From assembly GCA_964252035.1 (NCBI GenBank), contig OZ176203.1: DNA of 64,000 nucleotides. One strand, given 5' to 3'. The position numbers and the translations under genes were made by a program. Positions 1 to 62,423 of this stretch are shown here, one piece after another. Origin of the DNA: Podarcis erhardii (lineage: Eukaryota). Each line of letters opens with the position of its first letter. Within the stretch, counting starts at the first letter, position 1. The notes beneath the pieces are model-generated. The model was not told the origin of the DNA, did no database searches, and saw only the letters and a list, made by a program, of their open reading frames with translations.

Positions 1-1012
1 CTGGGGACGGCCGGCGCATCAACTGGGGGGGGGGACTGCTGACCTCCCCCCCAGTGACCCAAATTGAGCAGAGAGCGAGAGTGCCCGACCAACTGCCCAG
101 CGGTGCTCTGGGGCCAGGAAAACCCCGGAGCCAATGCAGCGAGAAGGAGGAGAGGAGGAGAAGGAAGAGAGAGAAAGAGGAAGGAGAAAAAAGAGGGGAG
201 CCCTGACCTTGCCACATCACTGCCGGAGGAGAGGTAGGAGAGCACCGGGAGGGTAAGGACACGTGGCCAAGCCCAGGCCTGAGCCGAGCCTACTCCACGG
301 CGGCTAGCGCTCCAAGAGAGCAAGCCGGGGCTCAGAGGAAGGCTGCATGACAGAGGAGACTACAGAAGAGAAGATATTACTTCTTTAAAAACAAAAACAA
401 AACAAAAACAAAAACCCCAAACTTTTAAAATAAGCTTTTTTTCCCTTTTCAAAAAAAAAAAAGTCTCCCCAGAGATTATTTGAAAAAACAACAACATGGT
501 AACCTTAGGGTAGAATTAAACACATTACTTTCCCATCTGCAGATTCTACCCTGCAAATGTGACCTGCCCCTAGAGAATGAGGGGAGAACAGAATAGCCTG
601 TTCCACTCTGTGACATTTTGACAGAGAATGGAATGTTCCATTCTACCCAAACCTGTGTGAATTGCAGAAGACAAGATTGCTTCTACAGTTCACTGTGGGT
701 GTACACAAATTGGCAGAACTCAGCAGAGCTGAGACCCTTTGCATATACTCGAAGCTATCCAGTATGCTTTTATTTTTGTGGTTTTTTTTGGGGGGGAAGA
801 GGGGCTGTAAAAGACATCACTACCACAACAGATCGTCGGAGTGTTCATTTCAGGAATGTAATGCAGATTACTTCCACAACCTCTTCCACAGTGAAGCCCT
901 TAGATACTGTTAAGATGTGTTGATAAAAACTGCACCAACTGTTTCACTGATGGCCTTGGAACACATGAGGGTTGGGTTAGAGTGTCTAGTCATATGTAAC
1001 TCACCCAGTGCT

Positions 1013-1023
1013 TCTCTCTCCCT

Positions 1024-1084
<61 letters not shown>

Positions 1085-1091
1085 TGTGTGT
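1013..1091. repeat. Compound (CT)n(GT)n microsatellite
   Basis: Directly visible. Confidence 0.95.
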
Positions 1092-2299
1092 TTGCTGATA
1101 CTCACCATGAAGTTGCTGCAGTAAGTGCCACGCTTTGAACATTTGGGGGGTAAGTGCTGGTACTCTGTACTCCTCACCTGGCATGCCACCAGGTCCTTCA
1201 AGGCAGGAATTTGCAAGCAAAATGCTCTTTTCCTTCACAGGGGGCCTCTGTTTATTTCTAGGCTAGGTCCAGAGCTTGCTGCCAAACAGGCGATTTTAAC
1301 TATGTTCTGGAAATTCATTTATGCTCGCTGAAATATAAAGTACCAGCCCAAACTCCAGTGGTAGTAGCATTTTGTTCGACTCTTACTGATGACTGGCAGA
1401 TGAATCTGGGGAATGTATGATTGCAAAGGTTATGCAAAGTTGGAACCCCATGCCTTGCCACAAACAGTAGTTATTCTGCTGGTGTTCTATGTGAAAGGAA
1501 ATAACTGAAACATTGGGAAACAAATTACATATTGTTTCTAGACCTGCTTGGAAACTTTCATATGTTTATATAACAGAGCCATTCTAATTGTGACTGTTTT
1601 GCAAGTGAATGGATGTGGATCAGTGTACCAGGCCATTAGATCTCTTGTCCTTAAAATGCATTCTGTGAAATGAGGTCTGTATCTGTTAATAATGTTTAAC
1701 CTTTCTAAAGTGGCATCTTAGATTAAAACATGGGTGTAATGTGTTGCTTTTTCATATTATTGTACAGTCTGCTTTAGCTGAATACCTGTCAACACTTAGT
1801 GTACTTATCAGATGCATAGCTGTTTTAAATGTAATCTGTAACCATTAGCAGATGCTGCAGCATGCGGCTATATTGGATATCCACCTGTCTCTGGCATGTT
1901 AGGAGCCTGAAAATCCTTTCCCAGCTGAGAAAGTGTGAGCATATGCAAGAGCAATTTCAAAATGTTGCTGCCTCTCGACATAAATATCAGTTTTACTTTA
2001 AGGAACCTTGAATGTTCCCATGAATGCATCTGTTAGTGAAATCTACACAGGACCAAGTTATCTCATCAAATGGCTACAACTTTCCTGATGCTATTGTAAA
2101 TATCCACAAAAGATAATCAACAGGTAAAACCCAAGATGAAATGATATAATGTGCTTTGGTAGAACAGGAAAGATGGAAAGCAGGGCCGAGGAAGAAAAAA
2201 AGGGAAAGGAAAGTGGCTTGTGTATTTAAAACATTGTAGTCTGGACTTGGCTCAGCATGTTGGTCTGTAACATGTAGTCAGCCTTTAATTTAATAACTA

Positions 2300-2547
2300 C
2301 AGTGGCACTTCTACTTACAAATGCGATCCATTTCGGGGTGCCGTTTGCACCCCAAAAAGTCTGTAAGTAGAGTGCCACTACTGCACGTGCGTGAAGCACA
2401 ATAGAGTGCTTCTGCGCATGCGCAAAGCGTGCAGATCGTTTATGAGCATGTGCGCAGGGCGAACCCAGAAGTAAACATTTCCGGGTTTGCCACATTCGTA
2501 ACCTGAAAAGCCACAACGTGAAGCAAACATAACACAAGGTATGGCTG
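2300..2547. mobile_element. Degenerate Tc1/mariner (Tigger-like) MITE
   Basis: Begins TA|CAGTGGCAC and ends AGGTATGGCTG. Internal hairpin AGTGGCACTTCTACTTACA...TGTAAGTAGAGTGCCACT (2301-2379). Same style as the element at 20284. Confidence 0.6.
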
Positions 2548-5500
2548 AAAACTGTATGCTTATTTAGAAACAGAATAAGCAAGAGTGTGGTAGAAATATC
2601 TTAACCTATTTTTACAGTAACAGTAATCTACACTGCTCTTAATTTACATCCATTTAGCTAAATGATTATCTTTTATGCATATTCTCACATATGGAAGAGA
2701 AACATAACCTAGTTTTTACTCAATAGTTGCATTCCCAGTTGCAATGTACCTTAACTCAGAACATTATGATTAAGTGAGGAAATGCATTTTAAGCAATAAA
2801 ATCATAATCTACTTCTGCATCTCCATTTATAATTGCATAAAGACAGAGATATTTCACATAAGCTCTGTTTAAATATGCTTAAGCATACACCCAGCAACCG
2901 AATTCAATATATGTTAACTGAATTCAATATACGGTATATTATCAGCTAATCATTGAACTGTGACATTTCACTTGAGTTTCAGAGTAATATATCTCTTCTT
3001 AGCAGGTAAGTTGATATCAAACAGATTTTGGTTTGCTATGGAATTGCAGAGCATGTGATGTGATCTGTCTGTTGCTTTTCTGGTTGTAAATATTCATGTA
3101 AGTAAGGTGAAAGAGCTGTTAATTGGCCAATGCACCAGTAAACCAGCAGTCAACATGGCAAAGTTGTATTTTGCATTTCCTCCATCTTATATGTCAACTC
3201 TGTATGTTATACTAAAGCAATGAGTTCAGAGAGTGCTACTAGCCTGGCAACAGACCCCATTATTGTTTTAACAAAGTGGCCATTGCGCAAAGGGGTTGTA
3301 TTTCCCAGGAATAAAGACTGAAGGAGACATTTGTATACCTTTCAGCACTATGCTTATGGTATCTCAATAAACATCAAGGCATCTACGTCCAAGCAAACCT
3401 GTGCACATGATATGTAGCAATAGTCTCATAATGGGATTGCAGCTGTCAGGCAGCTTAGCAGGAATGATTTGCCACATTTGCCTTTAACAGGCTACTGAAG
3501 TATTGACAGCGCGGTTGCTTTGTGTCCCATCACAGTTACACATACCATGAGGCGTAAGGATTGAAAATATACCAAGGTGCTGTCTTTATTATTAGCCTAT
3601 TTAGTACTTTGAATCCAAAGGGCTTTTTTGTTCTGTGCCTCCTCTGTGCTTGGCACTTCAATTTTTACAAATCAGAGAACTGAACAGCTTGCTCCTATGC
3701 ATGTTTATTTCAGCCGCACTTTGCCCAATGAAATTGACTTCCGGCTTGCAATTGTATATGTTCATATGAGTCTAGCTCCAGTGGCAGCCTTTTTGAAGCC
3801 ACCCAGAATCTCCCATATGAATTTGGCCTCTGCCTTATATTCTTCCTACTGAATCTTCCTACTGAAGCAGTCTCAAAGTGGCACCACAGAAGCTGCCTTT
3901 GTGTATTCTGCAGCCCTGATCATGCAGCATTCCAGAACATGTTTCTACACTGTCTTTTCTCAGTGTGTGGATGTTTGGGTCAGGGCCAGGAAGATTTGTG
4001 ACATCAGGAATGACCCCAAAGGCACAGCCCTGCTTCCTCTTAATCACGTGGAGTTGCCGCCATGCAATTAACCTATGAAGGGGGCTACAGTGGGTTGTAG
4101 AACTGATTTCATGATCAAACTATCAGGTGTGTGCCTAAATTCAGTTTGAATTATCAGCTTTTGGCATGGCTAGGTTGATCTTGCTGTACCCAGCACTGGA
4201 AGCTAATTTGCTAATAGGTTTTGATAGGGTCTGGAGAAGCAAAATGAACACCTTTAATATGACATTGTGCATAACAACACTTTTATCAAATCACCATCTC
4301 CAAAGTAATAAGAGATTTGCACCTTTAATGATGCTCTGTTGCTTCATTAACAGATAGCACTGTGTCTTCTCTGGGGAAGGAATAAATCCTTATACTTGTG
4401 TTTAGAAAAATGAGAAAGAGAGAAAGATCAGCATGAAGGTGTTATGAGGACATGGATATCCTCCTCCTAATCCACAGCGATTAGTGGCATATCTGCATTG
4501 ATGCTACTTTGCATAAGAATATCCTTTTGCCCTTGACTTTATCACAGGCTAAACTTAATGGGCCAGGAGCTTTCATTCATTTCAAACTAGGTTACATCCA
4601 CGATGAATTTGGCTCTCAAATACAAGACTGAGTGCTTGGTAATAACATAAAAAACCTGTAATCAGGAGGACTTAACCATTCTGTCCTAGCAGTCAGCAAC
4701 CTCCAGCTACTGTAGCAACATTGTATCAAATAACTATGAAATTCTAGAGGGGTGGGGAGAGTCTTGTTTTCATCATAAATACTGTTCTCAAATTAGTATT
4801 TAATGGATTTGCACAGAGTTTGGTAGCTGCAGCTTGCAATACTAACTTTTGTAGTGCTTTGGTTAAATTGGTAATCAGCCTAAAAACGTCTTAGGACTGA
4901 CCCTTTTTGTGTCTTAGAGAAGTGAATGAAAACTGTATATAGGTGCCTTTGTCTGATGTAATAGGCCTTTCTCTGAGTCTCCTTCCTGTCAGAGATGATG
5001 TGGGCAGTATTTGCAGAGAGTGCCTTGTCAGTCATGGTGCCCTGGTCTGGAGCTCATGTCCTATCTAGCACCAGCTGAAGGTTACTTTGATCAGTGGTGA
5101 GAACCGCTGGTTTGGACAAACCATGCCTATTTTTCCTGGGCCTGACATATATCACATCAGGCATAGACAAGTGCAAGCTGTGGCTAAAGGATGAAGAGTG
5201 GAGAGTAAACTTTGAATGCAAACCTTTGCAGCAATAATGAACACCTTTTGATTTGGCATCAACTTTTGGCTGAAAAGAAGAATTGGGAGGGCATTTGGAG
5301 TGCACTCCTGATTCTTCCCTTATATTCCCTGCCTTGAATTCAAAGGTTCTTCCTTTGCAGAGGCAGCTTCAGTTTAAGTGGTGCCTGCAAAAGGGGGGGG
5401 GGAATGATCACTTGACGGCACATTTAGTGTGTGCTCCTTATTCTTTCCTTTGAAATACAAGTACTATCTCCTGGTGTCATCAGGTGATTGGCAGAATGGC

Positions 5501-6206
5501 AGTTGGGAGGGCCTGTCCAGTTGTCAAAGGGGCCCATGGGGGTGGGTTAGTTCAACATCCATCCTGCTGGCTGGATCTAGTTTTCCATCTGTCATTTAGA
5601 TTGACTCACTTTAGCCTGACCTTACGATGAAATTCTAGCTGCTTTGCTTCCTTGTGTGGCTTCCTTGGTTTTATAATTATTCTAAATTATCCTTTGTATG
5701 GTGCCCTGAGTAAAGATTCTCAACATCAATCAAATAAATAATAAATAAAAGCTCCACATGTTCCTATCAGAATCCTACACAGGCAAGAGATGGAATCAGG
5801 GTGAAAAGGCAAGCAGACTCAGTTCTCTGAGCCCACCCCTGCTTCTGCCTCTCTTGGCTTGGCTCTGTCCCTGCCTTGTCACAGTTCAGCTAGAACTGAC
5901 CCTTCTAGTTTCAGTCAGATTTACTCCGCTATAGCCTGTGAAGAGCAGCAGGGAGCCTAAACCTGTGTCAACCCAATCACGGCCATGGTGGATGATCTGC
6001 ACCTAGAGATGGCTGGGCAAAACTATATCCTGCTCTATTATTAGTTCTTGCAAAAGCTTTTGTTGCTAGTGACAATGAGGTGTTTGTTACTATGGGATTA
6101 GCTGGTGCTTCGGGACCTATCTCTGTTGTATATATGCCTGGCAAACCATTGCTGTATCTTCATGCCTGAAAAAGCGAAAGGAGATGGATTTCTCCAGGTC
6201 GTACAA

Positions 6207-6529
6207 CAGGGGTCAGCAAACTTTTTCAGCAGGAGGCCGGTCCACTGTCCCTCAGACCTTGTGGGGAGCTGGACTATATTTTTGGGGGGTGGGGATGAAC
6301 GAATTCCTATGCCCCACAAATAACCCAGAGATGCATTTTAAATAAAAGCACACATTCTACTCATGTAAAAACACCAGGCAGGCCCCACAAATAAGCCAGA
6401 GATGCATTTTAAATAAAAGGACACATTCTACCCATGTAAAAACATGCTGATTCCCGGACCGTCCGCAGGCCAGATTTAGAAGGCAATTGGGCCAGATCCG
6501 GCCTCCAGGCCTTAGTTTGCCTACCCATG
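6207..6529. mobile_element. hAT-superfamily MITE
   Basis: Termini CAGGGGTCAGCAAACT...AGTTTGCCTACCCATG; 8-bp TSD TCGTACAA/TCATACAA (7/8); internal ~70-bp tandem duplication (6311-6445). Confidence 0.8.
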
Positions 6530-9500
6530 TCATACAATGACAAAAGGCACAGAACCTTTGTCCAAAAAGGGGGGGTGACAAACCCATCATAGGGAAAATC
6601 TTGTTCTAGCCCCACCTCATTGCAGTGTGTACATGATGCACATTATTCCCATGCACAGACAGGTCCCCATTTGTGCAGAGGTTGCATTCTGGGTTATTGC
6701 ACGTGTCAGTGGTCATGCATAAGCCCATTCCAGCCCCACCCCATTCAGGGGCAAAAAGCAGCACACGCAAAGGCGGTTGTGTGTACATTGGTTGCATGCA
6801 AAGTGGTCATTCCCTGTATACAATCATTTCAATGTGTACATGATGCAAATTGTCAAAATGCTCAAAATTGGGCATGGATTCAATGTTTGGTACCATCGAT
6901 GCATTGATGACAGCCTTTAATGAACACCCTTCTCATCTGAATCAGAAGCCACTCTGCTTACTCAGTGCCTTTTCATGGTTGGCAGCAAAATACAAATGGG
7001 ACAACTAAGGTGGTATGTACACAATACTGAGCCAATGGAAATTGTTGTTTTGTATGAGGGATGAGTGCACTTACTATTGCTGAGATGCAGCCCTTTCTGG
7101 TCAGTTAGGTTCATAGACTTGCTTCATAGAACTTTCCAAATGGGGTTTTTGTTCCCTAGAAGCCCCAACACTAAAATCAAATTCCAGAATTCGAAAGTGG
7201 CACAGCAGCACTTTGTGGTCAGCAATCCCTCTATTTACACAAACTTAGCATAACATATCTTGGATTTATTTTCCTAAAATCTGAGATATAGAATTATGGA
7301 TGGTTTGCAAGAAGGCACTATGCAAAGCGCTCAACTCCATAAGGCCCTTATAAATTACGTGAACCTAACCATGTCTCTTGACTGAGAGTTTGCCAATTGA
7401 TGCTAAAGTACAGTCTGTAATGCATTTCACAGTAGGTAAAACTGGGTGGAATACAATGCCATTTCTGTCTTAGAGTTTACATAAAGCTCCTATGTTTATA
7501 TAAACATATGACAAACATACTATTCTGCTCCCATATAAGATTTGGAAAGTCAAACAAAGAAGCTCTGCTTTGCCTTTATGACACAAAAGATATTGTCCAT
7601 AACCCCTTTTAGCTTACCAGCTTCTTTCAAACAACTATAACTTCCCAGATGTACTTTGCATTTTGAAGGCCTTGTTGACATACTGCTAGGGTAATATGTC
7701 ATGCATCATGGATCTTGGCTGGGTTCCTAAAGGCGTTTCATCAAGGGAAGATGACACTGAACCTCATGGATTCTACAGCCCCTTTCTGCATTTATATATT
7801 TAGAAAAAGCTGAGCTGCATATTCAGCTCTTTTGAAAACACATACACTGTAGTCCCTTTGCCAAAAGAACATACGTATCTGTCAGAATTTAAAGCTTTGA
7901 AATACTGCTTTCCTTCTATTTTCTTTCTTGACATGCATTTCCTTGGTTCTTCCATGGCTATTTGTGCTAAGCTAGTGGGAATGAGCGCTGTCAAGAGCTG
8001 CCATGGCTTTTACTTGGTGATTTAAAGATGAGGGACAGTCACTCATCTTCTTGCATCAGGACAAACTTCGGTCTTCCTAAAAACATCATGACTAGAAAAA
8101 GTCTCAAATATAGGTTGCAAAGAACTACGTGAATACCTAGCTTGGTCCTATCTATCCAAATGTCATGAAATTTGCAGCCATTCCCACATCAGACCTCCAC
8201 ATTTCAGACAGATGGGACAACATACCTCCATTTTATAAGCCCCAAATGATATCTGACAATTTCATTGCACTTTCTCTTCCTCCATCCCTAAGAACTCCTT
8301 GTGAGCTGAACACAAAGCTCTAGCCAAGGTAAAGCCATGCAACTAGAAACAAATGACTTGAAATTAAGCAAACTGTCATTTCATTTTATTCACTTTAATT
8401 CCCATTTGTTTCCACTATAAAAGCAACTGAAACAAATGGGGCTTCTTTTCATTTTTCATTCATTTTTTTAATGAATGCAACCTCTAGACCATTGCAGTGA
8501 AATGCACATTCTAATGCAAAATAGTATTGGTTTTGGTTGCCTTGACAATAAGGGTGTATCCCTTGTTCCTACAGCAGCACATTAGCTGCCTACCTAAACC
8601 TGCACCCAAAACATAAAGATGAAATCGCAGTTCCACTATGCATCAAATAAAAATTGCGATTAGACTGCAGTAGGCCAGCACTTCGTCGGTGTTGCAGCCA
8701 AGGTCAGGCTATGACTCTTTATGCCTGGTGCTGCCACCACCACCCCTTTAACACAGATGTCAGTGTTTGAACTTGGGCCTTTCTGCATGCAAAGGATCTG
8801 CCCTGCCCCAGAGCTATGGCCCCTACCATCGCCAAAGTCACTGTCAAGAAGCAATGCTAGGGATGCCTGAAACACTGTGTCAAGGTCTATAGAATTTAAT
8901 CCCAGCTCATTTCCAGTAACCGTTCCAAGTCTTTAATTTGAAAAGGATGACTAACAGATTTCCAACGAGTCTTTTTTGGAGGGGCCAGCACTGCAGAAAC
9001 TTGGTTTTAATTTAAAGGATGCCCCTGTCAATGCAAAGTGGCTGTTAATTACTCTCCATATTTTATTCATGGTCCCTTTAGAGACTCTTTATATGAAGGC
9101 AATCTAAAGAAAACATAAATGAGAACCTTGCATAGCATTTTTTCATCAGCTGCGGTGTTTTCTCCTGTCATTTCAGCATTGCAAATCTTTTGGATCTCAA
9201 GCGTGCATAGGAATGCCTGTAGCGAGAAGAGGAACAGAGTCAATTATAAATAAATATAGGCAGCTGGGAGCATTTTTCGATAAGCAACAATAATTTTAAG
9301 AAATCTCTACTGCCACAACGTCCCATTTTATTTTATTTTGTCTTTTTGTCTTCTGTTTCCTTGTTTGGAGGTGAGCAGGGTGGTGGTGGTAATATATGAA
9401 CCTGAATTACATCTTGTAGATGCTAGTTGTGGGTCACTGGCAATGTTATTTGTTAAGTGTGGGAGAGGTAATATTAGGAATGGGTGGATCAGTTTGGTGC

Positions 9501-10249
9501 TTGATTTGTATTTTTTATTTGTATTAAAAAACTAATAATTTTATGCAAGAGATGCTATCTGTGCATGAACATATACCACCCAGAACACAGAGAGACATAA
9601 TTTTTTAAAAACAATAATAATGGTTGAGGTTATTTATTCATGAGCTACCTCTTTGCCACCAGCAACATACAAAAACTGAAGATCAGGGTAGTTTCTACAA
9701 CAGTGTGATAGAAATATACTTGCATGGTACATAAATGAAGGATTCATCTAGAGCAGTGGGTCTAGAGCAGGTATGGTCATGAGGCCATACCAGGTTGGTT
9801 GCAGCAAAGCTATTGCTGCCATGTTGGATTCCAGCTTAGGCTGACCAGGCCACAGGAGCACTACATGCATGTCAGGACTAGGAAACACTCTTCTGATGAG
9901 ATGCTTATGTTATCCATTTTCACAAGTGCCGCAATGTGGCAGGAGAAAGGCGTGAGACATTTTTAATACTGTTCATATTGTTGGCTAACCACAATATGCT
10001 TTTCTAGTGCTATTAACTATAAATCAAAAGTGAAAATGTGAATGTAGGTCCCATGTTGCAGATTGGGAGTCAGAGACCTCACTCCTGTCCGTAACCATGC
10101 TGCAGCATTCTGCACTAACCAAATAACTCTATTCAAAGCAGATTTCAGAGTTTTCATTTATTCCTTGTCTTTCATCTGCATGTTAATTAGCCAGTTGTTA
10201 GCTTGAAAAATTCAAGCATACTCTGGTAAATTGCCTCATGTAGGATAAG

Positions 10250-10369
10250 AACTAGCATAGTGTAATGGTTAGAGGTTTGACAGTGGAGAGCTGCTTTGAA
10301 ATCTTCACATAGCCATGAAATTCACTGAGTGACCCTATACCAGTTCCTCACCATCTCCCAACATAACTA
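10250..10369 (+). mobile_element. Old tRNA/CORE-type SINE fragment interrupted by a MITE
   Basis: GCATAGTGTAATGGTTAGAG...AGCCATGAAATTCACTGAGTGACC resembles squamate MIR-like SINEs (recognised from memory, degenerate). Confidence 0.4.
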
Positions 10370-10614
10370 CCATATTTTTCGCTCTATAGGACGCACCAGT
10401 CCCGGCGTTCCCGGCGCTCCGGGGGCTTCAGGCGGCTTCAGCAAAAGCAACGCAAAGCTTCCAGAGTGCGGGGGGAGCTCTCCTTCTGTGCTTCAGAGGC
10501 TTCGCGGTGCTATCGCTGAAGCCAAGGAGCCTACATTCGCTCCATAGGACGCACACACATTTCCCTTTCATTTTTGGAGGGGGAAAAATGCGTCCTATAG
10601 AGCGAAAAATACGG
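10370..10614. mobile_element. Tc1/mariner (pogo-like) MITE, short form
   Basis: TIRs CCATATTTTTCGCTCTATAGGACGCA / TGCGTCCTATAGAGCGAAAAATACGG, TA on both sides; same family as 61880-62423. Confidence 0.9.
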
Positions 10615-11829
10615 TAATTCTTGTACAACCATTGTGATGGAAGGGCTGAAGACACCAGGGGTGGCCAGTTCTGGTGTCATTAACCAACATGAACAATGGT
10701 CAGGAATGATGGGAGCTGTCCATAATATCTGGGTAGCACTATGTGGGCTATTGCTAATGTCTTCCCTCCCTAGATAAGGGACAATATTTATTTGCAGTTT
10801 GAGCTTTCTTTGCCTACTCTGAATAGAGGCAGAACTGTGCTGCTAAGAATTTCTTTAGGCAAAACTAAGAGCTTTTTGTAATTCTTGGGGGAAAGTTTGG
10901 AAAGCCAGTTAAATTAAATAAAGATGGTGTTCATAGACTTGGGACAGTTCTTCTACAGAGTGGTGTAGCTTCCCTAAGAACATTTACTTATCTGGGCATA
11001 AATAAAGGATGATTGTGGGAAATTAGAATGTTTTGGAAACCTACGCATTACTCATGAAGATTAATTACAGAGCCTTCTCCCATTGAACTTAGTGCAAAAA
11101 GATCCCGTTGACACTTAGCAAGCAGACTGCGCCCACAGTTGGCTTTGTTTGTCTTGTAATGTCAAATAATCTTTCAGACACTTCATCGACCTAGTATATT
11201 CCAGCCATCATTTATTCGTCTCTCTTGGCTAGACTCAACAGAATCTTCCTGTGAGTGTAGCTGGCCAATATTTTGGAAGACACATCTCCTTGGGGCATGG
11301 TGACCTGTGGTATGGAAAGAATGCAAGCTGAAGTGATATAACCATGGTTTTTATTTACTGTCAAGTTGGTGAGTGGTACAGTGATGTTTGTATTCTTATC
11401 ACCGCGTGCTAACATATATATATTATTGTGAAGCTCACTGGCGTAACAGACATGGTTTCAGCAGAAAGATGAAAATAATGGCTAGAAGTCACTTGCCTGA
11501 ATACACACTTTGACATATGAAGTAAACAATAATTAAGGTAGTACATTTTAGGTAAATGCATTACAATTGGCATGATAGCCTAATTGCAGAGAAGGACTCA
11601 CTTTTGTCTGCTATAACAACTAGGGTTGTCTTCTTGCAGTGATAGTGTCTATACTTTACACACACAGATGCTGTCCCTCCCATTCTGTTCTTCAACTGGT
11701 CACAAAATTATTCAGGATGGTGCGGGGAGCCAAGCAGACTGTGAAGAGCTTCAAATATATATATATTTACACGCCAGCCCAATCTCTTAGTGGTGCAAGA
11801 TTCCAGGGGTACCAGCCATATTTACCAGG

Positions 11830-12140
11830 GTCTGTGCTTCCTTTAAAAATGAGACGCAGTGGAGACTGTAGTGTCTTTATGAAATATGGTTTATTTATAC
11901 ATATATATAACCTGAGCCTAAGACGGAGGGGCTCCAAGAGGGTCCTGTTTCCAAGAGGGTCCTGTTTCTCCCATTACTGCCTCCTTGGATTCACATTGCT
12001 CTGATCCCCCCTTTTCCAGCTTGCAAACTGCTTGCAAAATGCAAGTCTTTTTCCTTCTGCTTACAGCATCACCAGCTGCAATACCAAACTAAAAACTCTG
12101 CTTTTGCCTCTGATATCTGACTCTCAGCTCAGGATGGCTG
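11830..12140 (-). mobile_element. Possible LTR/solo-LTR fragment
   Basis: Minus-strand AATAAA followed by a CA-ending segment; 17-bp tandem duplication CCAAGAGGGTCCTGTTT. Boundaries and TSD not resolved. Confidence 0.3.
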
Positions 12141-12145
12141 GCATA

Positions 12146-13190
12146 TTTTTTTTTCTTCCATCAAACCTTTATTGGCGTCACTTACAAACATTCAGAATAA
12201 ATAGGCCAGTGCGATCTTGTCGCCATTTCAACAGTTCAGTCATTTGCCAAAGAGAAGAAGAGGCGAGCAATCTATTTCACCTCTGTGGGTCTCCAGCAAG
12301 GGCAGGGTCCTGTAGCATACTTTGGCGGCAGAAAATCAAATAGAGGAACTTAGCTACTGTCTTGGTGAGCTCCTGGTCTCTCCCCTGTAATAAGAAGCGT
12401 ATAACCTCTGTCTCATGATTCCATATTGGGATACATAGGTGGTCTAAGAATTGTTGGCAGAGATCATCATACATTTTACATTTAAGGGCCATGTGAGCTA
12501 GAGTTTCCACCAGGTGGGCATCACATGGGCAGATCCTATCTCCTTCTGCCATACCCGCAAACCTACCCCAAAGGAGGTTAGAAGGATTACAACTGAACCT
12601 AGCCAGTGAAAAAGCCCTTCTTTCTTGTGGTTTAAACAAAAATTGTAAATAATAAGGGTTAAATTCCTGCACCCAAGACAGTCGAAAATAAAGAGGGGGA
12701 CATATTTTTCCCGCAGCTGAGATTAGTTCCTGGCGATCTATGTTCCACAGCCTAGTTTTTAACATGGCCTTGGTGACTGAAAAAGCCACAGCAACCAGGA
12801 GATCCTCTGAAAGCCCAAGTTGCTGTCCCTGGGGAAGGAAAGGAGTCTGACAGAATTTCGCATATTCTTTGCCTGCTAATGTCTCATTTAATGGTTCATC
12901 TACCAGGCCATGACTAGGCTTTGTTCCCCTAATAACCCACAATCAACAAGCTATCACCAGGCTGGCCTGGCTTGTATATTAACATAAACTGCATCCAGGG
13001 CTTCAGTGTTTGGCACAATTTCATTGCCCAAACCTTCATTAATTCTAACTTTAATTGGACCCTGGAATTTAGGGTATTTTGCATACCACAAACTCATAAC
13101 AATATACTCAGTAAATGAGCAAAAAAAATGGCTAATGAGGTTCATGGGTAACATTCTTCAGGTCAAGGTCCATATTACCTAGGTCAAAAT
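12146..13190 (-). mobile_element. 5'-truncated non-LTR retrotransposon (ORF2 C-terminal part and 3' tail)
   Basis: ORF 12277-12942 encodes RRAFSLARF...GRF...RICPCD...ETLAHMALKCKMYDDL, a LINE ORF2 C-terminal Cys/His (zf-RVT-like) motif. The minus-strand 3' end is GCCAATAAAGGTTTG followed by an A-rich tail. Clade not determined. Confidence 0.75.
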
Positions 13191-13254
13191 CTATCAGAGG
13201 GTGCATTCCAAAAGTGTGTGGACCAGATCCAAAGGTAAGTGGGGGCATACATGC

Positions 13255-13345
13255 ACACAACACATGCCCTTAAGACACACGCAATCACACAACACACTTA
13301 ACACCACCACACACCCTAAACACACACACACACACACAGTTCACA
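13255..13345. repeat. CA-rich low-complexity tract with (CA)n
   Basis: Directly visible. Confidence 0.8.
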
Positions 13346-16300
13346 CACCTCTTGCTCAGCTGCAAGTTCAATGTGGAGATGCTATTTAGTGTGACAAAAT
13401 TAACATAGGCCAGGATTCTCATAGACCAGGATAATAGTAACTTGCTGCTTGGAGTGCAATTGAAACGTTTGTTAGAGTTGCTACTGAGTTTTCTGTTTTG
13501 CTTTGAGCTGTGGCAGGGAAGGGGAAGTAGGCAGATGAAGCACTTGGCCTGGGTGCAGCTCTTGCCCTGCCTAAAGCTCTTCTTCCTTGGAGTTGTAAAG
13601 GGAGATGTGGGAAGTGTATCTCTTCTGATCTTGACCAAAAGTTGACAATGCTCCTCTGATGATCCCCAAGCTCTCCAGAAATGCTCCCATGAAGATGTCT
13701 AGAAACTGTTTCAGAGGCTGAAGCTTAGTGAGGATTATTTCCAGATATTATGTAGTTGGGGGGAGGTTCCCCCCACCAAGGATAACACTTAGGATAACCC
13801 CATCAGGGATAATGTCCCCACTGCTACTACCTTTGCTACCACTACACTTAGTGGAGGAAATTTTAAAGCAACCATGTTGTCACTGCTGCCATAGCAACCA
13901 AGAAATGTTGTAAGGGGCTGACGGGCTACTTTTTGAACCAGTTCCAGCCTGCTCCACCAATTTCCCACCCCTGACATATACAAGGATTGTCTTATCAGAT
14001 TAGTTTTGTCATAGAGTCAAAATGTCAATGCCATGTTAGAAAATGGTAGATGCCACGCTAAGAATCATTAGGAAAGGGATGTAAAGTATACTTGCAAGTA
14101 CCACAATGTCCTTAAACTATACTCACATGTGCAGTCATGTTTGAGTATAGCTTGAGTAGCTCCATCTCAAAAAGAAAATCACCAACCAGAAAGGGGGTGT
14201 AATAATCAGGGAGATGGGGAAACCACCTTCTCTTTGAGAAATGTGAAAGGGTCTCTTGAATTTAAGGGGAAAGAAAGGAGATGATAGCTGTGTGCAGAAA
14301 GTAGATACAGAGGAACTTTTATAATTTTCTCTTAATACTGGATTTTGGAGTCTTCCAGTGTAATCGACTGGCAGTAGATTCAGGGAAATGCTTGTTCGCA
14401 CAAACTGTAATTAATATGTGAATTTGCAACCACAGAATGTTATGGTGGCCACTGCTTAGAAAACTTTTTTAAGGATTGGCCTCCTTCATGAAATGCATAT
14501 CTCTGATGGCTATCATTTATAACGGCTAAATGCAACCCCCAGTTTCAGAGACAGCATGGGAAACAATGAGAAGAGGGCTATCCACTTCAAGCCCTGCTGG
14601 TGGACTTCCAGGACAGAACAGACCTTTGGTCTCACCCAGCAGGACAGTTCATAAATTCTTATCTCTTGCCCATCCTCCTCCTTTGCCCACAGGAGACAAA
14701 AGTAGAGCCCAGCTGGCCACAGCAGTACATAAAGAAGGAAGATGATGAAAATGCATATGAAGATATGGAAAGGGTGTTGTAGTAGAAACCCCAAATTAAT
14801 CTTTCCAAATATGCACAGTCAGTGCAACTCATCAGAATGAGCCATGAATCAGAACTTTAAAATGTAAGATATAGAGTAATTGCCAGCATTCACATTTTGT
14901 AGAATACAGACAATAATAAATGATCCTGAATGTGAACTAGGACCTGATTCAAATTTGCTAAAATCCTCTCCTCATGCCATTGTCAGAATTGTTTACAACC
15001 TTGCCATGATTTCATGTCTAAGCCTTCAACTTTCACTTGACCTTGCCTAAAAGCTGTGATACATACATAGTGGTGCCCCTGACTAGGAGTTTTAGATATC
15101 GTAGACTTGACCCACCCTATCCTGGACCGTAATTGTTTTAAGTGCTGTCTGGTGTCTGAGCCACAGATTGTTCCCAGTGGCCTGATCCTGTCAAAACTCT
15201 TAAAGGAGTTGATACTAGAAAGTCTGTTCTTACTGTGCTGCGGCCAACTATGTGCCCTTTCATTTCAAAAGTGAACACATAATCACTCTTTAAAGTTTAA
15301 ACAGCAATTGATTCTAAACTAGGAAAAATGCACGGGTCCAAAAATGAAATTTATTATAAATAACTCTGATCCTATGCGTTGACAAGAACTGGAAATTAAG
15401 TATTCTCTTATTAAGCAAGGATGCATGCTTGCCTGTATATCTCATTTGTTGTTTGGGTGGTATTTGACTTAACACTGCAACTACACTACTAGTTCAGTTT
15501 TCCAAGGGAATGCTGCACTTCAGTATCACTCCCTTTGTGAAGCAATTTAAATATAAAGTAGCCTGGCATCAATTATTGTATGCTATTATTATTATTATTA
15601 GTTGCCCAATGCCTGATTCATGGACAATCTCATTTTAAGTTTCTCTCCAAGAAGCTGGTACATTAAAAACAGTGTATTTGCACAACCCAAAATGAGCATC
15701 TATAAAGTATAAACATTGTACTGTAAACATTTCGATAAGGTGAAGAAAACCTCAGAGTAAATACATCATCTCAGCAGAAGTCAATTCCTTCTAAGGGATT
15801 GAGAACAACTTACAGCATCTCTTCTAACTCCATCTCCTTCCTTCCTTCATCCATGGCAAAACTGAAATGCCTCTTTCTTACTGTCAGGCAGGAGACAATT
15901 GTGGGGGTACCTACCCATTAAGCTGCCTGGATAAGGAAATCTTCCTGCTATGAAGATAACCATAATAGAAAGATTTGCTTAAGAACTGGGTAGTCATTTT
16001 TTAAAATGTCCTTTCGCATGTCAGAGTGCCATAAATAAAATTGCTTGGCTGATAAAACATAAAACAGGGCTGGGGGTGAAGAGAAGAAGAGAAAATCGTC
16101 ATGCAAGCAGGTGTGAATAAAAGCTTCACAGTGTGTGTCTTCCAGGTACATAACCAAAAGACACATTTCTGTGTGGTGCGTCCTCTTTGGCTTCTTGTTT
16201 ATGCACCTCTGGCTGACCCGATTATGTCAAGTGCCCTTTGAATTCCTTTAATAATAGCTGCTCTCCTCTCGCAGTGATTTCAGACAAGGGCAGCGTCAGC

Positions 16301-19300
16301 ATCAACCTTAGTCAGCTTCACATTGCCCAAACCAGTCCCTGCTCCTGTGCACTGTAGGGTGTGCCACCTTGAAAGGGAAAGAGATGTGTAAATGCACCTT
16401 GGAGATCAAAACCACTGCAAATAATACAAGTTTGAACCTTTCTTGTTCATAGCCTTATGCGCATAAGAATTCTCCAGTGGTATTTCAGAGATGTGACAAA
16501 AGAAAAGTCAATCCCATTCTCATAAAAGTAAAGCTCGCAAACCCCCATTGAATGTTACATGTTGTGTTCCACCACTGTCAGAAGGCGATTTGATCCAGCA
16601 GAAGCTTCCATGAGAATAAAGGCCAGAGGAGTGATTGTTGCCGTTTCAGCCTTCCCTCTGGAGCCTGCTCCAACCCTTCACCGTCTTCTCCGAAGGATTG
16701 GGGGACCATTTAAAATAGTATGGGAGATGACTTGGGGAGGGGGGTCTGCAAAAGAATGGAGGAATTTGCAAAAATAACTTCCTCTGGGTCAAAAGGCTAC
16801 CTGTCAGAAGAGAGGTGTTGCAGTACCTGACTCTCTGCAAGTTAAAATCTAACAAAGACATTAGGCAGAAGTGCAGAATATACTTGAGTCCAGTGTAATC
16901 AGTTGAAAATACCGAGTCTCATAGCACTTTAAAAGCAAACAACTTTTATTATGGCATATGCCTTTAGGGATTCTAATCTACCTGTGTGAATGCTATTTTC
17001 CTTCACCGTCCCCATCCCTTTTTCCTCTTGGGTTATGTCTTGTAGATTATAAGCCTGAAGATGGACACTGTAATTTTTGATATTTATCTGTAAGAGGCTC
17101 TGCAGCCTTTTCTACTGAAAAACAGCATAAAAGTACTTCAAATAATTAAATGAATATATGCCATATGTGAAATATTTGCTATTGCTTCTCTTAATTTAGA
17201 TACTTCTTATTCAGTTATGTACCTCTTATTCCCAAAGTTATGACCGTAAGAAAACATGAGCAATAAATGTTAAGGTAGCAATTGCTAATAGGAAAATAAC
17301 ATGATAAAAAATATACAATAATTGCAAAGGGTGGTCACAGAACAATGCAACGTCCAACTGCTGTAACTGTCACTGCTCAATGGGAGGCCAGTCAGCCAGT
17401 CTATTTCATAAACTTTTAATCATGATAATGGAAAACAATTGTCAGAAGCATCCTAGTGAATATTATTTGAGGCTGGAGGAGTTGGCAGCCATCTGTTCAT
17501 TAATGTCTGCCATTGACACCTATCAAAAATATTACAAAGCTTCAGGAGTGAAGACATTACAACTTTATTTCTTGTACAAATGGATTACTATCTTTGATAA
17601 CTTTTAATGATTTGTTATTATGCCACATTTGTTTCGAGACAGACGATTAGCAACAAATATGCCTCCAGCTTCCCAAGATGTTCTAAAAGAAATTATTCTT
17701 TGTGTCATACTTCTGGAAAAAACCAAAAACTTATTGAAACAGTTATCATCGTTAACGAGGAAATCATATTTTCACGATGCCAGAAAGCAGGAGGCTTGAA
17801 ATCACCACAGATTCAGATTCAGAGGTCACAAGTCACTCATCTGAGCTAGTCGCCCACCTTTGAAAGTGCCTGGCAACCTTATTGCTGCCTCTGGGAATAG
17901 ACAGCTGACATCTCCAGCTCCTGAATGTCACAGCCAGTAGAGGGCAAAGGTAAACCAGGTAATAAGCTGCTATTTTTATTCCTCAAGGGAGACAGCTGAG
18001 GAACAACAATATTGAGGAATACAGTCCAAGACTCGTATGCCTTGAACAAGCAAGAGACAAGCCCCAGATGAAGTCAGATCACAGCAACGTATAGAATCCA
18101 AGCAATTGTAAGCAAATAAGCTCAGAAACGGCAGCAAAGAGTGCTTGAGAGCCAAACTGGTTGCATGTATCCCCCCCCCCCACCAAACAATGTACCAGTA
18201 TATTATTGTTTTAAATGGGCGGGGGGAATGTGGTGAAGGTTGCACTGGAGGGGATGGGAACATAGCAAGGGGAAGAAACTGTTTAATGATTTCCTTCCTC
18301 GCTATTTATTAATTGAAACTGCTCCTCATGCTATATAAATAGGAATCCTTTCAGCAATGGCAAAAAGAACCCTCTCCACCCCCTGCAGTAATATTAGGCT
18401 TAAAAAAACCCCTCACTTTTGGTGCCAAGGGGTGCACCAACTACAGCATGGAGGAAATGATTTTTGTTGTGTTGCAGTTGGGATGGTGGGGAAGGGTTAA
18501 ACCTCCTCCCTCTGCATTCCAAATTAAAATTGACCCTGCACATACAATTAAACTTTTCAATACCACAGTGTGGTGGCTGTGAGTAGGTGTGATGCAGTTA
18601 ACATCACATGTCATTAGGCCCTAAGTAGAGGGCACTGGGAAACAGAGTGAAGTAGGTTCTTTCCCTACATACTGTACATGCACTTCTTTCACTTCTTAGT
18701 TTAATATTTCGCAACAGCCTTGTTTTTCATTTAAAAAAACCTGCCATAAGAAAAACACACAACCATGGGCTCTTCCAGACAACTTGTTTATTGAGCGTTC
18801 ATCCTTGTTTGTTTTCACAAAAGTTGTGCAGTTTTTTTAATTGTTTCTTTCCATGGAGGTTACAAGATATTATGTCAAACCATTGCTTTCCCACACTTCC
18901 CAATGGTTCCCCATTGCTTTCCTTACTGCAAAAGTCTGGGTTTGGGGCCCAAGTGGATTTTTGCACAAGACCACTAAACCCACTTCAGTTGTGCAAGCTA
19001 AATTTGGCAATGTATGATTGAAGGCCGCCCTCAAAATAGCGGCAGTCTGGAAGCAGCTGTGTATCTAGTTTGGCTCTGGATCAGTACCTTTTTATTTTCC
19101 CAGCAGTACTTCCTAACCCCAGATTTAAAAACAACAACTCTCTACTGTACTATTTTGATTGGAGAATTTTTTTCTTTTTCGGATAAAACCCAGCCCTTAA
19201 GGATTTCAAGAATACAAAGCATTTTGGATGGATACTGAAAATAGGTTGCACTTTGCATGCAAGTTTGGAGGATAGTTAATAATAAATGGGTTGAGTGTAT

Positions 19301-19333
19301 ATGCTACTTGTACACAAAATAGTTTTGCAAGAG

Positions 19334-19764
19334 AGGTTAAAAGTTCAAAGTTGAGCCTGAGTCTATACTGCCTTCACTGTTCTCTTTTAATTATCTGAGG
19401 TCAGGAAGTTAATAATACTAGAAATACCCACTAGAGACCTCTTGCTCACTGTATGAACTTTAAACTTGTCTGCATTTTTTTTTTTTTTGAAAGGGTAAAA
19501 AGTTCAGTGAAAACATGATGGTTTTCTCCTTTGGCCTACACTAGTTCAACCTCAAGGGTTAAAAGTTTAACTGTAAAAGAGGAACCTTTGTTCGCTGAGG
19601 TAATTTCAAAAGTTCACTTATTAAAAGGTAAGATTTCAAATAAAAGGCAAAGTCCAGTGTGATTCTATTCCACAAGAATGAAAACCTTGTGACAAAGGAA
19701 TACTCTTTAATCTGTTGTCACATCGGAATGACCTTCACATTTTATTGTCTTTGTGTTTTGAACT
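19334..19764. promoter_or_regulatory. Cluster of nuclear-receptor half-sites and DR1/DR2 elements (candidate enhancer)
   Basis: Eight perfect RGKTCA hexamers, four DR2 elements with an AA spacer, and an HNF4-type CAAAGTCCA; see findings. Confidence 0.55.
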
Positions 19765-19980
19765 TTGGAAAAGCAATGTCTCCTGTAAGCCAACTTTATA
19801 GGTTTAACGTCAACACACAGCACTGGATAATTCTTTATATTTTTCAAATAAATGCAATTTATGTTTACCACTTACACATTAAGTTCATTCCTGTATGCCT
19901 TGTGTTGCTGATACCGCTTTCTTATAGATGGCAAGTAGTGATTCATAAAAATATGCTTCTTTCACACATTGGTATATTAC

Positions 19981-20277
19981 GCTAAACTGAACCATGGCTT
20001 AGTGCACATCTATAAACATGCAGGTTCCTAGGGAAGAGCTCACACCTGCTATGTTCTTCCTTGGTCCCTTTAGCTCAGCAGAGCACTGAGCTAAATAAAC
20101 CCTGGCTATAAGTCATGGCTAAGAAGGAGAAAGCTTAACCATGAGCCCGGGTTTGGAGAACAGGCCATCCTGAATCACTACTGAGCTAAAGGGCCAGGGA
20201 GGAGCAAAGCAGCTGTGATCTCCTGTCTGGGAACCTGCATGTTCATGCATATGCATTAAGCCATGGTTCAGCTTAGC
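19981..20277. mobile_element. Palindromic MITE (~100-bp imperfect inverted arms; possibly PIF/Harbinger-like)
   Basis: GCTAAACTGAACCATGGCTTAGTGCA...TGCATTAAGCCATGGTTCAGCTTAGC, with inner arms continuing to CCCTTTAGCTCAG / CTGAGCTAAAGGG. Confidence 0.75.
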
Positions 20278-20283
20278 AAACTA

Positions 20284-20525
20284 CAGTGGTACCTTAGGTT
20301 AAGAACTTAATTCGTTCTGGAGGTCCATTCTTAACCTGAAACTGTTCTTAACCTGAGGTACCACTTTAACTTATGGCGCCTCCTGCTGCTGCTGCACCGC
20401 CGCCACACAATTTCTGTTCTCATCCTGAAGCAAAGTTCTTAACCCGAGGTACTATTTCTGGGTTAGCGGAGTCTGTAACCTGAAGCATCTGTAACCTGAA
20501 GTGTCTGTAACCTGAGGTACCACCA
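20284..20525. mobile_element. Tc1/mariner (Tigger-like) MITE
   Basis: TA|CAGTGGTACCTTAGGTTAAGAAC ... GTAACCTGAGGTACCAC; internal repeated TAACCTGA motifs; right TIR clipped. Confidence 0.85.
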
Positions 20526-20944
20526 ATGTGCATGAAAGAAGCAGATTTTTTTATAAATAACTACTTGCCATCTATAAGAAAGTGGTATTTGAAAGAACAA
20601 TGCACAACCCTGTAAATGTAGATCAGAGGCCTCAATGCTAAACCTTTGAAAAACTGAGCTAGGGATACCTTGGTGTTTATGAGTGAAGCACACCACAAAG
20701 TTCCACCCACAGTAGACTCTAACCCTGTTCAGGTCAGTTGTTGCCATGTTGTGTACTGAAAACACTTGACTTATGTTGGGAGGGTCAAGTGTGCAACATG
20801 CATCACATTTATATAGTGTTCAGGCAAAGTGCTTCACACCCATTATCTCAGCTCTTTAAGCTCAGTCAAGGACTTAAATTGTTGCTAGCTAACCTGAGAT
20901 CAGTGAATTTGTTTATTATACGAATAAAGTGTTGTTTAATCATA

Positions 20945-21235
20945 CAGTGGTGCCCCGCAAGACGAATGCCTCGCAAGACTAAAAACTCGCTAGACGAAAG
21001 AGTTTTCCGTCTTTTGAGGTGCTTCGCAAGATGAATTTCCCTATGGGCTTGCTTCGCAAGACGAAACGTCTTGCGAGTTCTTGCGAGTTTTTTCCCTCCC
21101 CCCTTTTTCTAAGCCGCTAAACCGCTAATAGCGCTAAGCCGCTAAGCCGCTAATAGCCGTGCTTCACAAGACGAAAAAACCGCAAGACGAAGAGACTCGC
21201 GGAACGGATTAATTTCGTCTTGCGAGGCACCACTG
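20945..21235. mobile_element. Young Tc1/mariner (Tigger-like) MITE
   Basis: 22-bp TIRs CAGTGGTGCCCCGCAAGACGAA / TTCGTCTTGCGAGGCACCACTG (21/22), TA on both sides; CpG-rich with repeated GCAAGACGAA and CCGCTAA units. Confidence 0.92.
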
Positions 21236-23412
21236 TATCTTAAACTGTTGTTACCCACCCTGAAATCTTCTAGGATGAACAGTGGGATAGATAAGATCAA
21301 TTTTTAAATAAATTTCTATTGATAAAATAAATTTAAAAATAAATGTCACTATGCCCATATTGTGGTTAGGAGTGAGGAAGGAATGAAACTGAAAAATAGT
21401 GGCTTGCTTGAACCCACGTAGTTCATTTGTGAGTAATGTGAGAATTTGAGCCAGTAGCTGATTAGCTCATATGTCACACTCTTAGCTGTGACATTACCCT
21501 ACATACTGGATCCAAAGCTTTCCTTCTCTAGTATTTTTGCTAAGAAATCCATTAATTTTGCCTCAGTGTCCTTAATTTTCAGACCTTTCTTTGCATCTCT
21601 AACCAAACCATCTCTGTTTCTATTCCCAATGTAAAAGCTGTACGCTACATTGCTTCAAAAGTTGGATTCAGATCATTTTTCTTTATATAAAAACTAGGAA
21701 GTGTATTTGTTCTCATTAAGGCACTCTTCTTAAAGTGACATAAATTCATTTCCTTCATCTAGTTAGCAAATGGGAAGTGCTCGTGTTTGAGGCTCTTCCA
21801 GTTTCAGTGCAGTAAGTGTCAATGGACAGAAGCCAAATTTGTTCATTTGGCCTTGTAGATCTTACAACTGAAAAAGAGGTGGTTTGGATTTATTTATTTA
21901 TTTAAAAAATGTAATTGAAATTATAAGCAGAGGCTCTAAATGGACATATGCTGTGAATTATTTCAAATACGTATGTTGCTTAGATAATTGGGAAGCAGCA
22001 TGAAGGTTGCGTTCTCAATTTTCCTTGGCATGCTGTTTTAAACATTGTTTTGTATTGTGTTGCCTTGAATCCACTCTTTTTTGAGGATTAAAATCCACTA
22101 TCCGGGTGCTAGCAGAGTCCTTCTCTGGTAGTTGCTCATGTTCTGTCCCTCACAGTTAGGTACCCAGGGAAAGCCTATCATCTCCAGATCAATATCCCAA
22201 ACTTCTGTGCCCCTAAGGGAAATTTCATTTTGCTATCATGCAGGGCTCCAATTATGAAACAATGGGTAGGAGGTCAGTCCACAAGCTCCATCCTCTGGTT
22301 CCTCCAAATTTTAGCTAAAGACTGAAGCAAAGAGGCAGAGCAACACAAAAGCCCCCCTCTTTAATTCGAGCCATGCTATCATATTAGAAAGGAAGCTTGT
22401 GTAACACCATGTCCTCAAGGAGCAAGCATGATGAGGGGAATATATGTATTAACTTGACTTGTCCTAGTCCTTGTCATGCCTACTAGCTCTGCATTCTGTA
22501 GAGCAGAGGAGGGGAACCTGTAGCCTCCCAGACATTGCTGGACTACAACCCCTAACCATTGGACATGGGAGTCGGAGACAATTTCTGCTTGGCCACAAGT
22601 CTCCTACTCCTAGTGAAATGGAAATATAGGCCCTTACTGTTTATTAGAAAAGATGGCAAGAGATTTGAGGCAAAACTAAGGAGTGAACTAAGTGTCAGAA
22701 CGAATGAAGAAGCTGCCACGAGAATTTTTATACTGAATCTTTAGAGTTGCTGTTCCTGTAGAATAGCTTGTATGTTTGTTCAGAACAAGACATTTCATGA
22801 TAGAAATATTATGCAAAATTGACAGTATGGTGGAGTAACAAAATGGCTATATATTATTGAACATATAACCACATATTTCTTATAACGGTAGTCACACATG
22901 CACATTTCAGTGCCTAGTACTGTACACATGCTACATATTAGCAACTTCTGTTCCTGTAAACCTATAAAGGCAAGTTCTGCAAGAAAATACACAATCTTAT
23001 GTAGAAATGTTCACTTTGGTAAAGTACTGGGTCAAAGCTACTCTCAAATTTCAAGTTTTGTGCTGCATGTGCAGGGGGAAGAGGGTGTAAATTATGAAAT
23101 GTCCTAAAATATGAATAAGTCATGTGGAAATAATTAATCACAGGAAACTCATTAAAATTAAAAGTGTATTTTAAATGGTTTCTTGATTGAGTACAAATGC
23201 CTCATTAATTAAGAATGCATTGACTTAAGAACACAAGTGATGTCAAAAAGAGAATAATGACTGACATGACATGGAATACAACATGCTGTGTGTTCTCTGT
23301 CTCAAACACTCAGGAAGAACAGTCTCCACAAAAGGTCAGTGGATGCATAAGATGGAAAGCTCTTCAATGCCTCTTGATTATTTTAAAGTGCCATTGTACA
23401 CAGGGATGTTGG

Positions 23413-51759: not shown

Positions 51760-51765
51760 TTTATT
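51760..51765 (-). terminator. Candidate NRIP1 polyadenylation signal
   Basis: Plus-strand TTTATT = AATAAA on the mRNA; UGUA (CFIm-type) at 51829-51826 about 60 nt upstream; U/GU-rich sequence downstream. Confidence 0.5.
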
Positions 51766-61880: not shown

Positions 61881-62423
61881 CGTATTTTTCGCCCTATAGG
61901 ACGCACTGCCCCATAAGGCGCACCTAGTTTTTTGGGGGGGAAATAAAGGGGAAAAAATTTATTTCCCCCCCCCCAGGCACAGGGCTGGGGCGGGGGAAGC
62001 CTGAGCTTCCCCCGACCCCAGAACAGGCAACTCTCCGCAAGCCGCGGGACCCCAGCGCCGGGCTCCCGCGCCTTGCGGAGAGCTGCGCCAAGCTTGGGCG
62101 CGCTGAGCTCAGCGCGTGCAGGCTTCAGCGTGTAGGCAACTCTCCGCAAGCCGCGGGAGCCTGGCGCCGGGCTCCTGCACCTTGTGGAGAGCAACCTGAA
62201 GCCCCGGCGTGACTGCTCAGCGCACCGGGGCTAAGGAATAAGAGGCAGGCAGCGCTGTGCAAGCCGGGGGAGCCCTCCCGCGGCTTGCGCACAGCTACCT
62301 GAAGCCGACCCCTCTCACTCTCCAGGCTTCAGCGAAAGCCTGCATTCACCCCATAGGATGCACACACATTTCCCCTTCATTTTTGGAGGGGAAAAAGTGT
62401 GTCCTATAGGGCGAAAAATACGG
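61880..62423. mobile_element. Tc1/mariner (pogo-like) MITE, long GC-rich form
   Basis: TIRs CCGTATTTTTCGCCCTATAGGAC / GTCCTATAGGGCGAAAAATACGG, TA on both sides; internal direct repeats GCAACTCTCCGCAAGCCGCGGG..GCGCCGGGCTCC. Confidence 0.92.

Follow-up and report, generated by a model that had tools for sequence, protein, structure and literature searches.

The NRIP1 locus

The DNA analyzed here is a 64,000-nucleotide stretch from the lizard Podarcis erhardii, referred to below as the window. The nearest gene to the half-site cluster described in this study is NRIP1, whose single coding exon lies on the minus strand (Table 1) and is 99% identical to NRIP1 of Podarcis muralis. The position and strand of this exon give a distance of about 37.0 kb from the stop codon to the cluster on its 3' side, in agreement with the ~37 kb stated in an earlier reading of the window (hereafter the first-pass annotation). 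Exact look-ups of lizard NRIP1 and of the ORFs adjoining the cluster returned no record, and a word search with a 108-aa ORF at 19659–19982 returned no match. Eight related organisms contain 52–100% of the 31-mers of 16500–19900. No Rfam family was matched in positions 1–19383 or 19426–64000. The local comparisons were performed with 42 bases (19384–19425) masked, and this stretch is absent from the statistics given below. The window also contains, 1.8 kb upstream of the NRIP1 start codon, a GC- and CpG-rich stretch at 62020–62330 whose units are duplicated internally and in part palindromic. At 12277–12942 on the minus strand, there is a 221-codon ORF without a Pfam match whose CxxC...H...C pattern is reminiscent of a LINE ORF2 tail.

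NRIP1 (RIP140) dampens most ligand-activated nuclear receptors and is itself induced by hormones and retinoids, so the control of its level matters for metabolism, reproduction, and retinoid responses. Previous work described NRIP1 as a retinoic-acid-induced repressor of RAR (PMC3091300), and its induction by retinoic acid was observed in zebrafish endoderm (PMC8608873), in mouse cells, and in chicken LMH cells (PMC7923837). ChIP for RAR at zebrafish nrip1a and mouse Nrip1 gave peaks upstream of the coding exon or within introns, not downstream, and one of the peaks near nrip1a sits in an element whose conservation extends from fish to mouse (PMC8608873). The human enhancer GH21J015439, also upstream of NRIP1, overlaps the transcription start site of the non-coding neighbour LOC101927745 (PMC9335095). 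A search of the accessible literature for a 3' NRIP1 regulatory element found no report.

Several mobile elements lie to the right of the cluster. A palindromic element (19896–20604), whose arms at 19896–19951 and 20549–20604 are 84% complementary, begins 16 bp past the right edge of the conserved element described below. Two insertions are nested in it: a hairpin element (19976–20285; 70% self-complementary) and a MITE (20286–20525) with five TAACCTGA (six AGGTTA) repeats. Another MITE (20944–21237) is Tc1/mariner-like, with TA flanks and 24-nt terminal inverted repeats (TACAGTGGTGCC...), and contains about ten copies of CGCAAGACGAA in both orientations.

Receptor-type half-sites in the 3' flank

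Eight perfect RGKTCA hexamers are present at 19342, 19398, 19454 (reverse), 19501, 19543, 19611, 19729 (reverse), and 19759 (reverse). On average, the window has 0.95 of them per 431 bp, and elsewhere in the 64 kb a stretch of that length contains at most five, so this is the sole such peak. The first-pass annotation had listed these eight half-sites, and every coordinate was confirmed; the DR2, DR1, and HNF4-type strings that it quoted were also found exactly as written. However, the signal of the cluster is narrower than that annotation had it and is carried by the octamer AAAGTTCA. AGTTCA accounts for six of the eight hexamers, five of these six have an identical AA flank, and five of the eight copies of AAAGTTCA in the 64 kb fall within 19340–19766. 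Together with two one-base variants, AAAGTTTA at 19562 and AAAGTCCA at 19649, they form a homotypic cluster of five identical and two variant octamers within 433 bp (Table 1). The variant AAAGTCCA is contained in CAAAGTCCA at 19648, which is unique in the window, and the 14-mer RGGTWAAAAGTTYA is common to three of the motif copies. The variant AAAGTTTA is not a standard half-site.

Direct repeats were scored as one perfect half-site combined with a second half with at most one mismatch. On this basis, three of the four DR2s and three of the 12 DR1s in the window are located in the cluster. The cluster contains no pair of two perfect half-sites at spacings of 0 to 8 and no DR5; an RAR/RXR element, taken as two RGKTCA halves arranged as DR2 or DR5, was not found there. 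The four AA-spaced DR2s proposed in the first-pass annotation are present as strings but not as pairs of two good half-sites; each of their degenerate 5' halves violates the invariant TCA or G2. HNF4 motifs were defined as xxxxCAAAGTCCA or as a DR1 with AGTTCA or AGGTCA as the 3' half (PMC3384313), and this definition is matched by CAAAGTCCA at 19648, by CAAAGTTCA at 19759 on the minus strand, and by the three DR1s with a one-mismatch partner.

Table 1. Coordinates of NRIP1, the conserved element, and its half-sites, with their state in the comparison species Z.
Feature	Position	Strand	Observation
NRIP1 coding exon (nearest gene, 1169 aa)	56750–60256	-	Four NRIP1 Pfam domains; start codon located
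Conserved non-coding element, whole alignable extent	19271–19880		Sensitive blastn vs L003/L005; one colinear block, 633 columns
Best conserved core	19332–19684		84–88% identity to Z, standard blastn
Composite site 1: AGGTTA-aa-AGTTCA overlapping AGTTCA-a-AGTTGA	19334–19354	+	Identical in Z over 24 nt
AGGTCA half-site	19398–19403	+	Z has a perfect RGKTCA at the equivalent offset
Site 2: AGTTTA-a-AGTTCA (TAAAGTTCA, as in the Otc HNF4 site)	19454–19467	-	14/14 identical in Z
Site 3: GGGTAA-aa-AGTTCA	19493–19506	+	14/14 identical in Z
Bare AGTTCA without AA flank	19543–19548	+	AATTCA in Z, not conserved
Site 4: GGGTTA-aa-AGTTTA	19556–19569	+	14/14 identical in Z, within the 49-nt unchanged run
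Site 5: ATTTCA-aa-AGTTCA	19603–19616	+	AGTTCA kept; flank in Z is ACAGAGTTCA
Site 6: AAGGCAAAGTCCA	19644–19656	+	AAAGTCCA kept in Z; C-to-T change at position 5
Bare AGGTCA (TGACCT on the + strand)	19729–19734	-	TGACTG in Z, not conserved
Site 7: CAAAGTTCA	19759–19772	-	TTTTGAACTTTGGA unchanged in Z; outer 5' part altered

Conserved non-coding element in species Z

For the orthologue search, metagenome contigs were scanned for the exact 22-mer at 19334–19355, and four loci were returned. Two of them (L001 and L003) are 99.8% identical to each other and belong to species Z, a working label for vertebrate host DNA in metagenome contigs. The other two, L002 (1209–1231) and L004 (1173–1195), were rejected as orthologues because only the 23-mer at 19333–19355 is common to them and the window. 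They represent one GC-rich bacterial lineage and are 98% alike, and the shared 23-mer can be treated as a single chance match.

Standard blastn aligned the Z loci with the window at 19427–19684 (84% identity), 19332–19373 (88%), and 16194–16277 (79%). The sensitive comparison gave a conserved element of roughly 610 bp (Table 1), with identity to Z dropping to ~50% on either side, and two other colinear blocks at 11228–11356 and 15901–16277. Within the element, a 49-nt run (19544–19592) is without change between the lizard and Z. A Z contig (Ga0065711_1003944, 51 kb), traced through its called ORFs, shows 12 colinear blocks that extend over 11.2–52.8 kb of the window and cover ~10% of this interval. 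The contig stops near the expected position of the NRIP1 stop codon and carries no NRIP1 coding sequence. The distance from the element to the block at 51719–52771 is 36.0 kb in Z compared with 31.8 kb in the lizard. Relative to this one comparison species, the element is orthologous, syntenic, and conserved far beyond the neutral level.

The block at 51719–52771 (1.1 kb, 75% identical to Z) lies 4–5 kb 3' of the stop codon and could be either a further conserved element or the distal portion of a long NRIP1 3' UTR. The second strongly conserved non-coding block, at 39801–40124 (and 39543–39576), is 83.6% identical to Z over 324 nt, lies 17 kb 3' of the NRIP1 stop codon, and has no receptor half-site cluster.

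DNA of species Z occurs in at least four metagenome assemblies, among them IMG 3300005287 and 3300000035; one sample label, HCE12, might hint at a sample rich in host tissue. The fetched parts contain no Alu or B1 marker words, 14 kb searched against Rfam, which took in all of L003 and with it the Z counterpart of 19384–19425, gave no 7SL- or tRNA-like match, and recurring interspersed repeats are essentially absent over 50.8 kb; for these reasons, Z was not taken for human. To our knowledge, such repeat poverty is unlike any mammal. Bird genomes are repeat-poor, and the lineage of Z is possibly avian. The flanks of the conserved blocks could not be aligned, which indicates that Z is distant from the lizard.

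Conservation of sites and spacers

The octamer set was fixed from the lizard sequence alone, before the Z orthologue was found, and site 1 was left out of the conservation statistics because it had served as the search key. The remaining six octamers are identical to Z at 47/48 positions, compared with 218/293 (74%) at the core positions outside the 14-mers (Fisher 3e-5), and only 38 of 20,000 random six-octamer sets were as good in a permutation. Five of the six octamers are fully kept, compared with 30% of all 8-mers in the core. The first-pass annotation had suggested checking whether half-sites are better conserved than spacers, and for the extended half-sites, the answer in this one distant vertebrate is positive. 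The octamers are retained better than the remainder of the element, and we regard the strength of the site-versus-spacer test with one comparison species as moderate (p about 0.002 to 0.01).

Taken together, the 5' halves match Z at 28/36 positions, which is no better than background. The 14-mers at 19454 (minus strand), 19493, and 19556 are kept at 14/14 positions in Z; sites 5, 6, and 7 have altered 5' parts. At site 5, the altered flank in Z leaves the octamer with one mismatch. Neither of the two bare hexamers that lack the AA flank (19543 and 19729) is intact in Z. Site order, orientation, and spacing are the same in Z, apart from a T run that is 8 nt shorter and single-base indels, and Z has four AAAGTTCA copies of its own inside the element and very few elsewhere. 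Unchanged runs such as 19544–19592 reach well past the receptor-type sites, so the element carries other information and other factors matter too. Liver-type partner motifs were searched with consensus strings: an HNF1-like site at 19275 is kept at 8/13 positions in Z, and FOXA and C/EBP motifs gave nothing notable.

Chance and repeat explanations

The role of chance was evaluated using 1000 third-order Markov simulations of the window. At least eight clustered RGKTCA hexamers appeared in 3/1000 simulated windows (~0.3%), so the hexamer count alone would be expected by chance dozens of times per genome, and this frequency lends some weight to the view that the cluster is a fortuitous grouping of AT-rich hexamers. 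However, AAAGTTCA never exceeded three clustered copies and 0/1000 simulations reached the five observed at 19340–19766, which upholds the claim that the cluster is non-random; the same sites are also retained in species Z. We therefore regard a chance grouping as extremely improbable. A further possibility is that the cluster is what neutrally remains of local duplications or of a mobile element that contained short repeats. Outside the cluster, complex 8-mers with at least five copies per 431 bp occur in the window only as internal repeats of two MITEs, located ~0.5–1.5 kb to the right, and since only these repeats match the octamer density, a decayed mobile element was a serious rival before the orthologue was found. 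Against this origin, the element is a single copy at the syntenic place in species Z, whose neighbouring sequence no longer aligns, and it lacks inverted terminal repeats, a target duplication, and a tandem period. A neutral relic is thus very improbable, while an ancient mobile element that was co-opted for regulation would still be compatible with these data. The preserved, syntenic single copy and the sites retained in Z make both the repeat and the chance explanations for the cluster unlikely.

The structural searches gave the following results. Tandem Repeats Finder detected no tandem array at the cluster, and the similarity of the flanks among the motif copies was at the level of shuffled sequence (z 0.3 and 0.7), so long duplicated units behind the copies were rejected. 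The T run at 19476–19490 was considered as a trace of retroposition and rejected, as no target-site duplication was found. No terminal-inverted-repeat self-match was detected at the element, unlike the three neighbouring MITEs. The descriptions of the cluster as not being a minisatellite and as lacking the hallmarks of transposable elements, both from the first-pass annotation, were borne out by the absence of a tandem period, inverted termini, and target-site duplication. There is no further copy of the element in the 64-kb window; because the neighbouring MITEs equally lack a second copy in it, this is a powerless test.

Candidate binding factors

The octamer AAAGTTCA forms the 3' half in two published elements: the Rarb DR5 probe (PMC4591280) and the CYP26A1 R1 element, which is kept from human to amphioxus (PMC5247814). 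The string TAAAGTTCA corresponds to the validated HNF4 site of the Otc promoter, which was used as a positive control (PMC4692214). Protein-binding arrays and ChIP showed that xxxxCAAAGTCCA binds HNF4 but neither RXR, COUP-TF2, nor other receptors, and that HNF4, more than RXR, prefers AGTTCA as the 3' half in vivo (PMC3384313). The conserved site AAAGTCCA is of this type, reportedly bound by HNF4 but not RXR. Across the sites, the 3' half and its A-rich lead-in are kept, the 5' half is largely free, and AGTTCA occurs beside AGTCCA; because of this pattern, an HNF4-type DR1 or extended half-site would fit the octamers no less well than RAR/RXR on DR2, and perhaps better. The AA-extended half-site could also be read by a monomeric receptor.

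The first-pass annotation had proposed that RAR/RXR heterodimers occupy the four AA-spaced DR2s and that the cluster acts as a retinoic-acid-dependent enhancer closing a receptor-to-corepressor feedback loop. Three points are consistent with this model: in the Rarb and CYP26A1 elements AAAGTTCA is the half on the RAR side, the 14-mers at 19334, 19493, and 19556 are retained at 14/14 positions in Z, and retinoic acid induces NRIP1 in cells of zebrafish, mouse, and chicken. However, the cluster offers neither a direct repeat with two perfect half-sites nor a DR5, TCA or G2 is broken in every 5' half, and the fourth DR2 is without its 5' half and spacer in Z. In addition, AAAGTCCA is reportedly not bound by RXR (PMC3384313), and the known RAR peaks at nrip1a and Nrip1 are upstream or intronic (PMC8608873). 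The RAR/RXR ligand-feedback model is one of several readings and not the best-fitting one, and we consider it improbable.

Proposed function

The comparison with Z leaves the presence of a constrained regulatory element at 19271–19880 well supported, and the conserved receptor-site cluster is a good candidate for a gene switch. The half-site array is non-random, and the element is single-copy and orthologous in a distant vertebrate, Z being the one comparison species. On balance, we lean toward the explanation that this ~0.6-kb element is a distal cis-regulatory module whose working parts include seven extended receptor-type half-sites in both orientations. The half-sites have the form [N]AAAGTYCA, and the cluster is the core of the element, which is located in the gene-poor flank 3' of NRIP1. 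A nuclear-receptor DNA-binding domain is presumed to read the octamers, and the best fit is an HNF4-type dimer that occupies DR1-like sites whose 5' half is free; alternatively, the reader could be an RXR heterodimer or a monomeric receptor on the AA-extended half-site. Multiple occupancy would then drive enhancer activity, and the target gene would be NRIP1. If this target is correct, receptors would set the level of their own corepressor.

A different explanation accepts the constraint on the element but assigns the octamers to a factor other than a nuclear receptor, or assigns the element a role as a lncRNA exon or promoter, an insulator, or a replication or matrix element. Conservation does extend far past the receptor-type sites, AAAGTTTA is kept even though it is a non-canonical half-site, and the two canonical hexamers without a flank (AGTTCA at 19543, AGGTCA at 19729) are lost in Z. 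However, the kept octamers exactly match receptor sites that have been used experimentally, and no Rfam family was detected in the two intervals searched (1–19383 and 19426–64000). Length differences of 8, 5, and 2 nt, together with several one-base indels, also speak against a coding or tightly structured RNA. We consider such a non-receptor role less likely than the receptor-type module.

A more far-reaching form of the receptor-type module is an ancient multi-site receptor sensor, in which seven half-sites, fixed in number, order, and orientation since the split of the lizard and Z lineages, would set the NRIP1 level from 37 kb downstream. This proposal is speculative and rather unlikely to hold in full. 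If it is true, the element would provide a second, 3'-located arm of the receptor-to-NRIP1 feedback loop, beside the known upstream RAR-bound elements. The element is a concrete and easily mutable object for asking whether, and which, receptors control their corepressor distally. The analysis also indicates that a single distant comparison can tell such site arrays from look-alike transposon repeats.

Comparison with known systems

The Tc1/mariner-like MITEs at 20286–20525 and 20944–21237 resemble the conserved element in that a short motif is present 5–10 times, in both orientations and at irregular spacing, within a few hundred bases. In contrast to these MITEs, which have terminal inverted repeats and in one case a TA duplication, the conserved element has neither and is kept at the orthologous place.

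The RARB beta2 DR5 and the CYP26A1 R1 element share AAAGTTCA with the lizard element as the 3' half-site plus the last spacer bases, and RARB and CYP26A1 are, like NRIP1, genes that feed back on retinoid signalling. However, RARB and CYP26A1 have one or two elements close to the promoter, in which a perfect 5' half-site precedes the octamer by five bases, whereas the lizard element has seven sites 37 kb away, lacks a DR5, and shows degenerate or free 5' halves. When compared with HNF4 sites, the element contains one perfect CAAAGTCCA at 19648 that corresponds to the H4-SBM xxxxCAAAGTCCA (PMC3384313), and TAAAGTTCA at 19454 on the minus strand equals positions 5–13 of the Otc site (PMC4692214). 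The polarity described for HNF4 sites is matched by the free 5' half and the kept 3' half. Unlike in HNF4 sites, position 5 is mostly A rather than C or T, and seven candidate sites in one element are unusual among HNF4 sites.

Within the NRIP1 regulatory domain, the closest counterparts are the RAR-bound elements of nrip1a and Nrip1 and the human enhancer GH21J015439, which are likewise conserved distal elements, some of them receptor-bound. These are located in an intron or in the 5' flank of the coding exon, whereas the lizard element is located 3' of the gene. The NRIP1 regulatory elements described to date are upstream of the coding exon; a conserved 3' element whose receptor-type sites form an unusually dense and well-preserved array differs from them.
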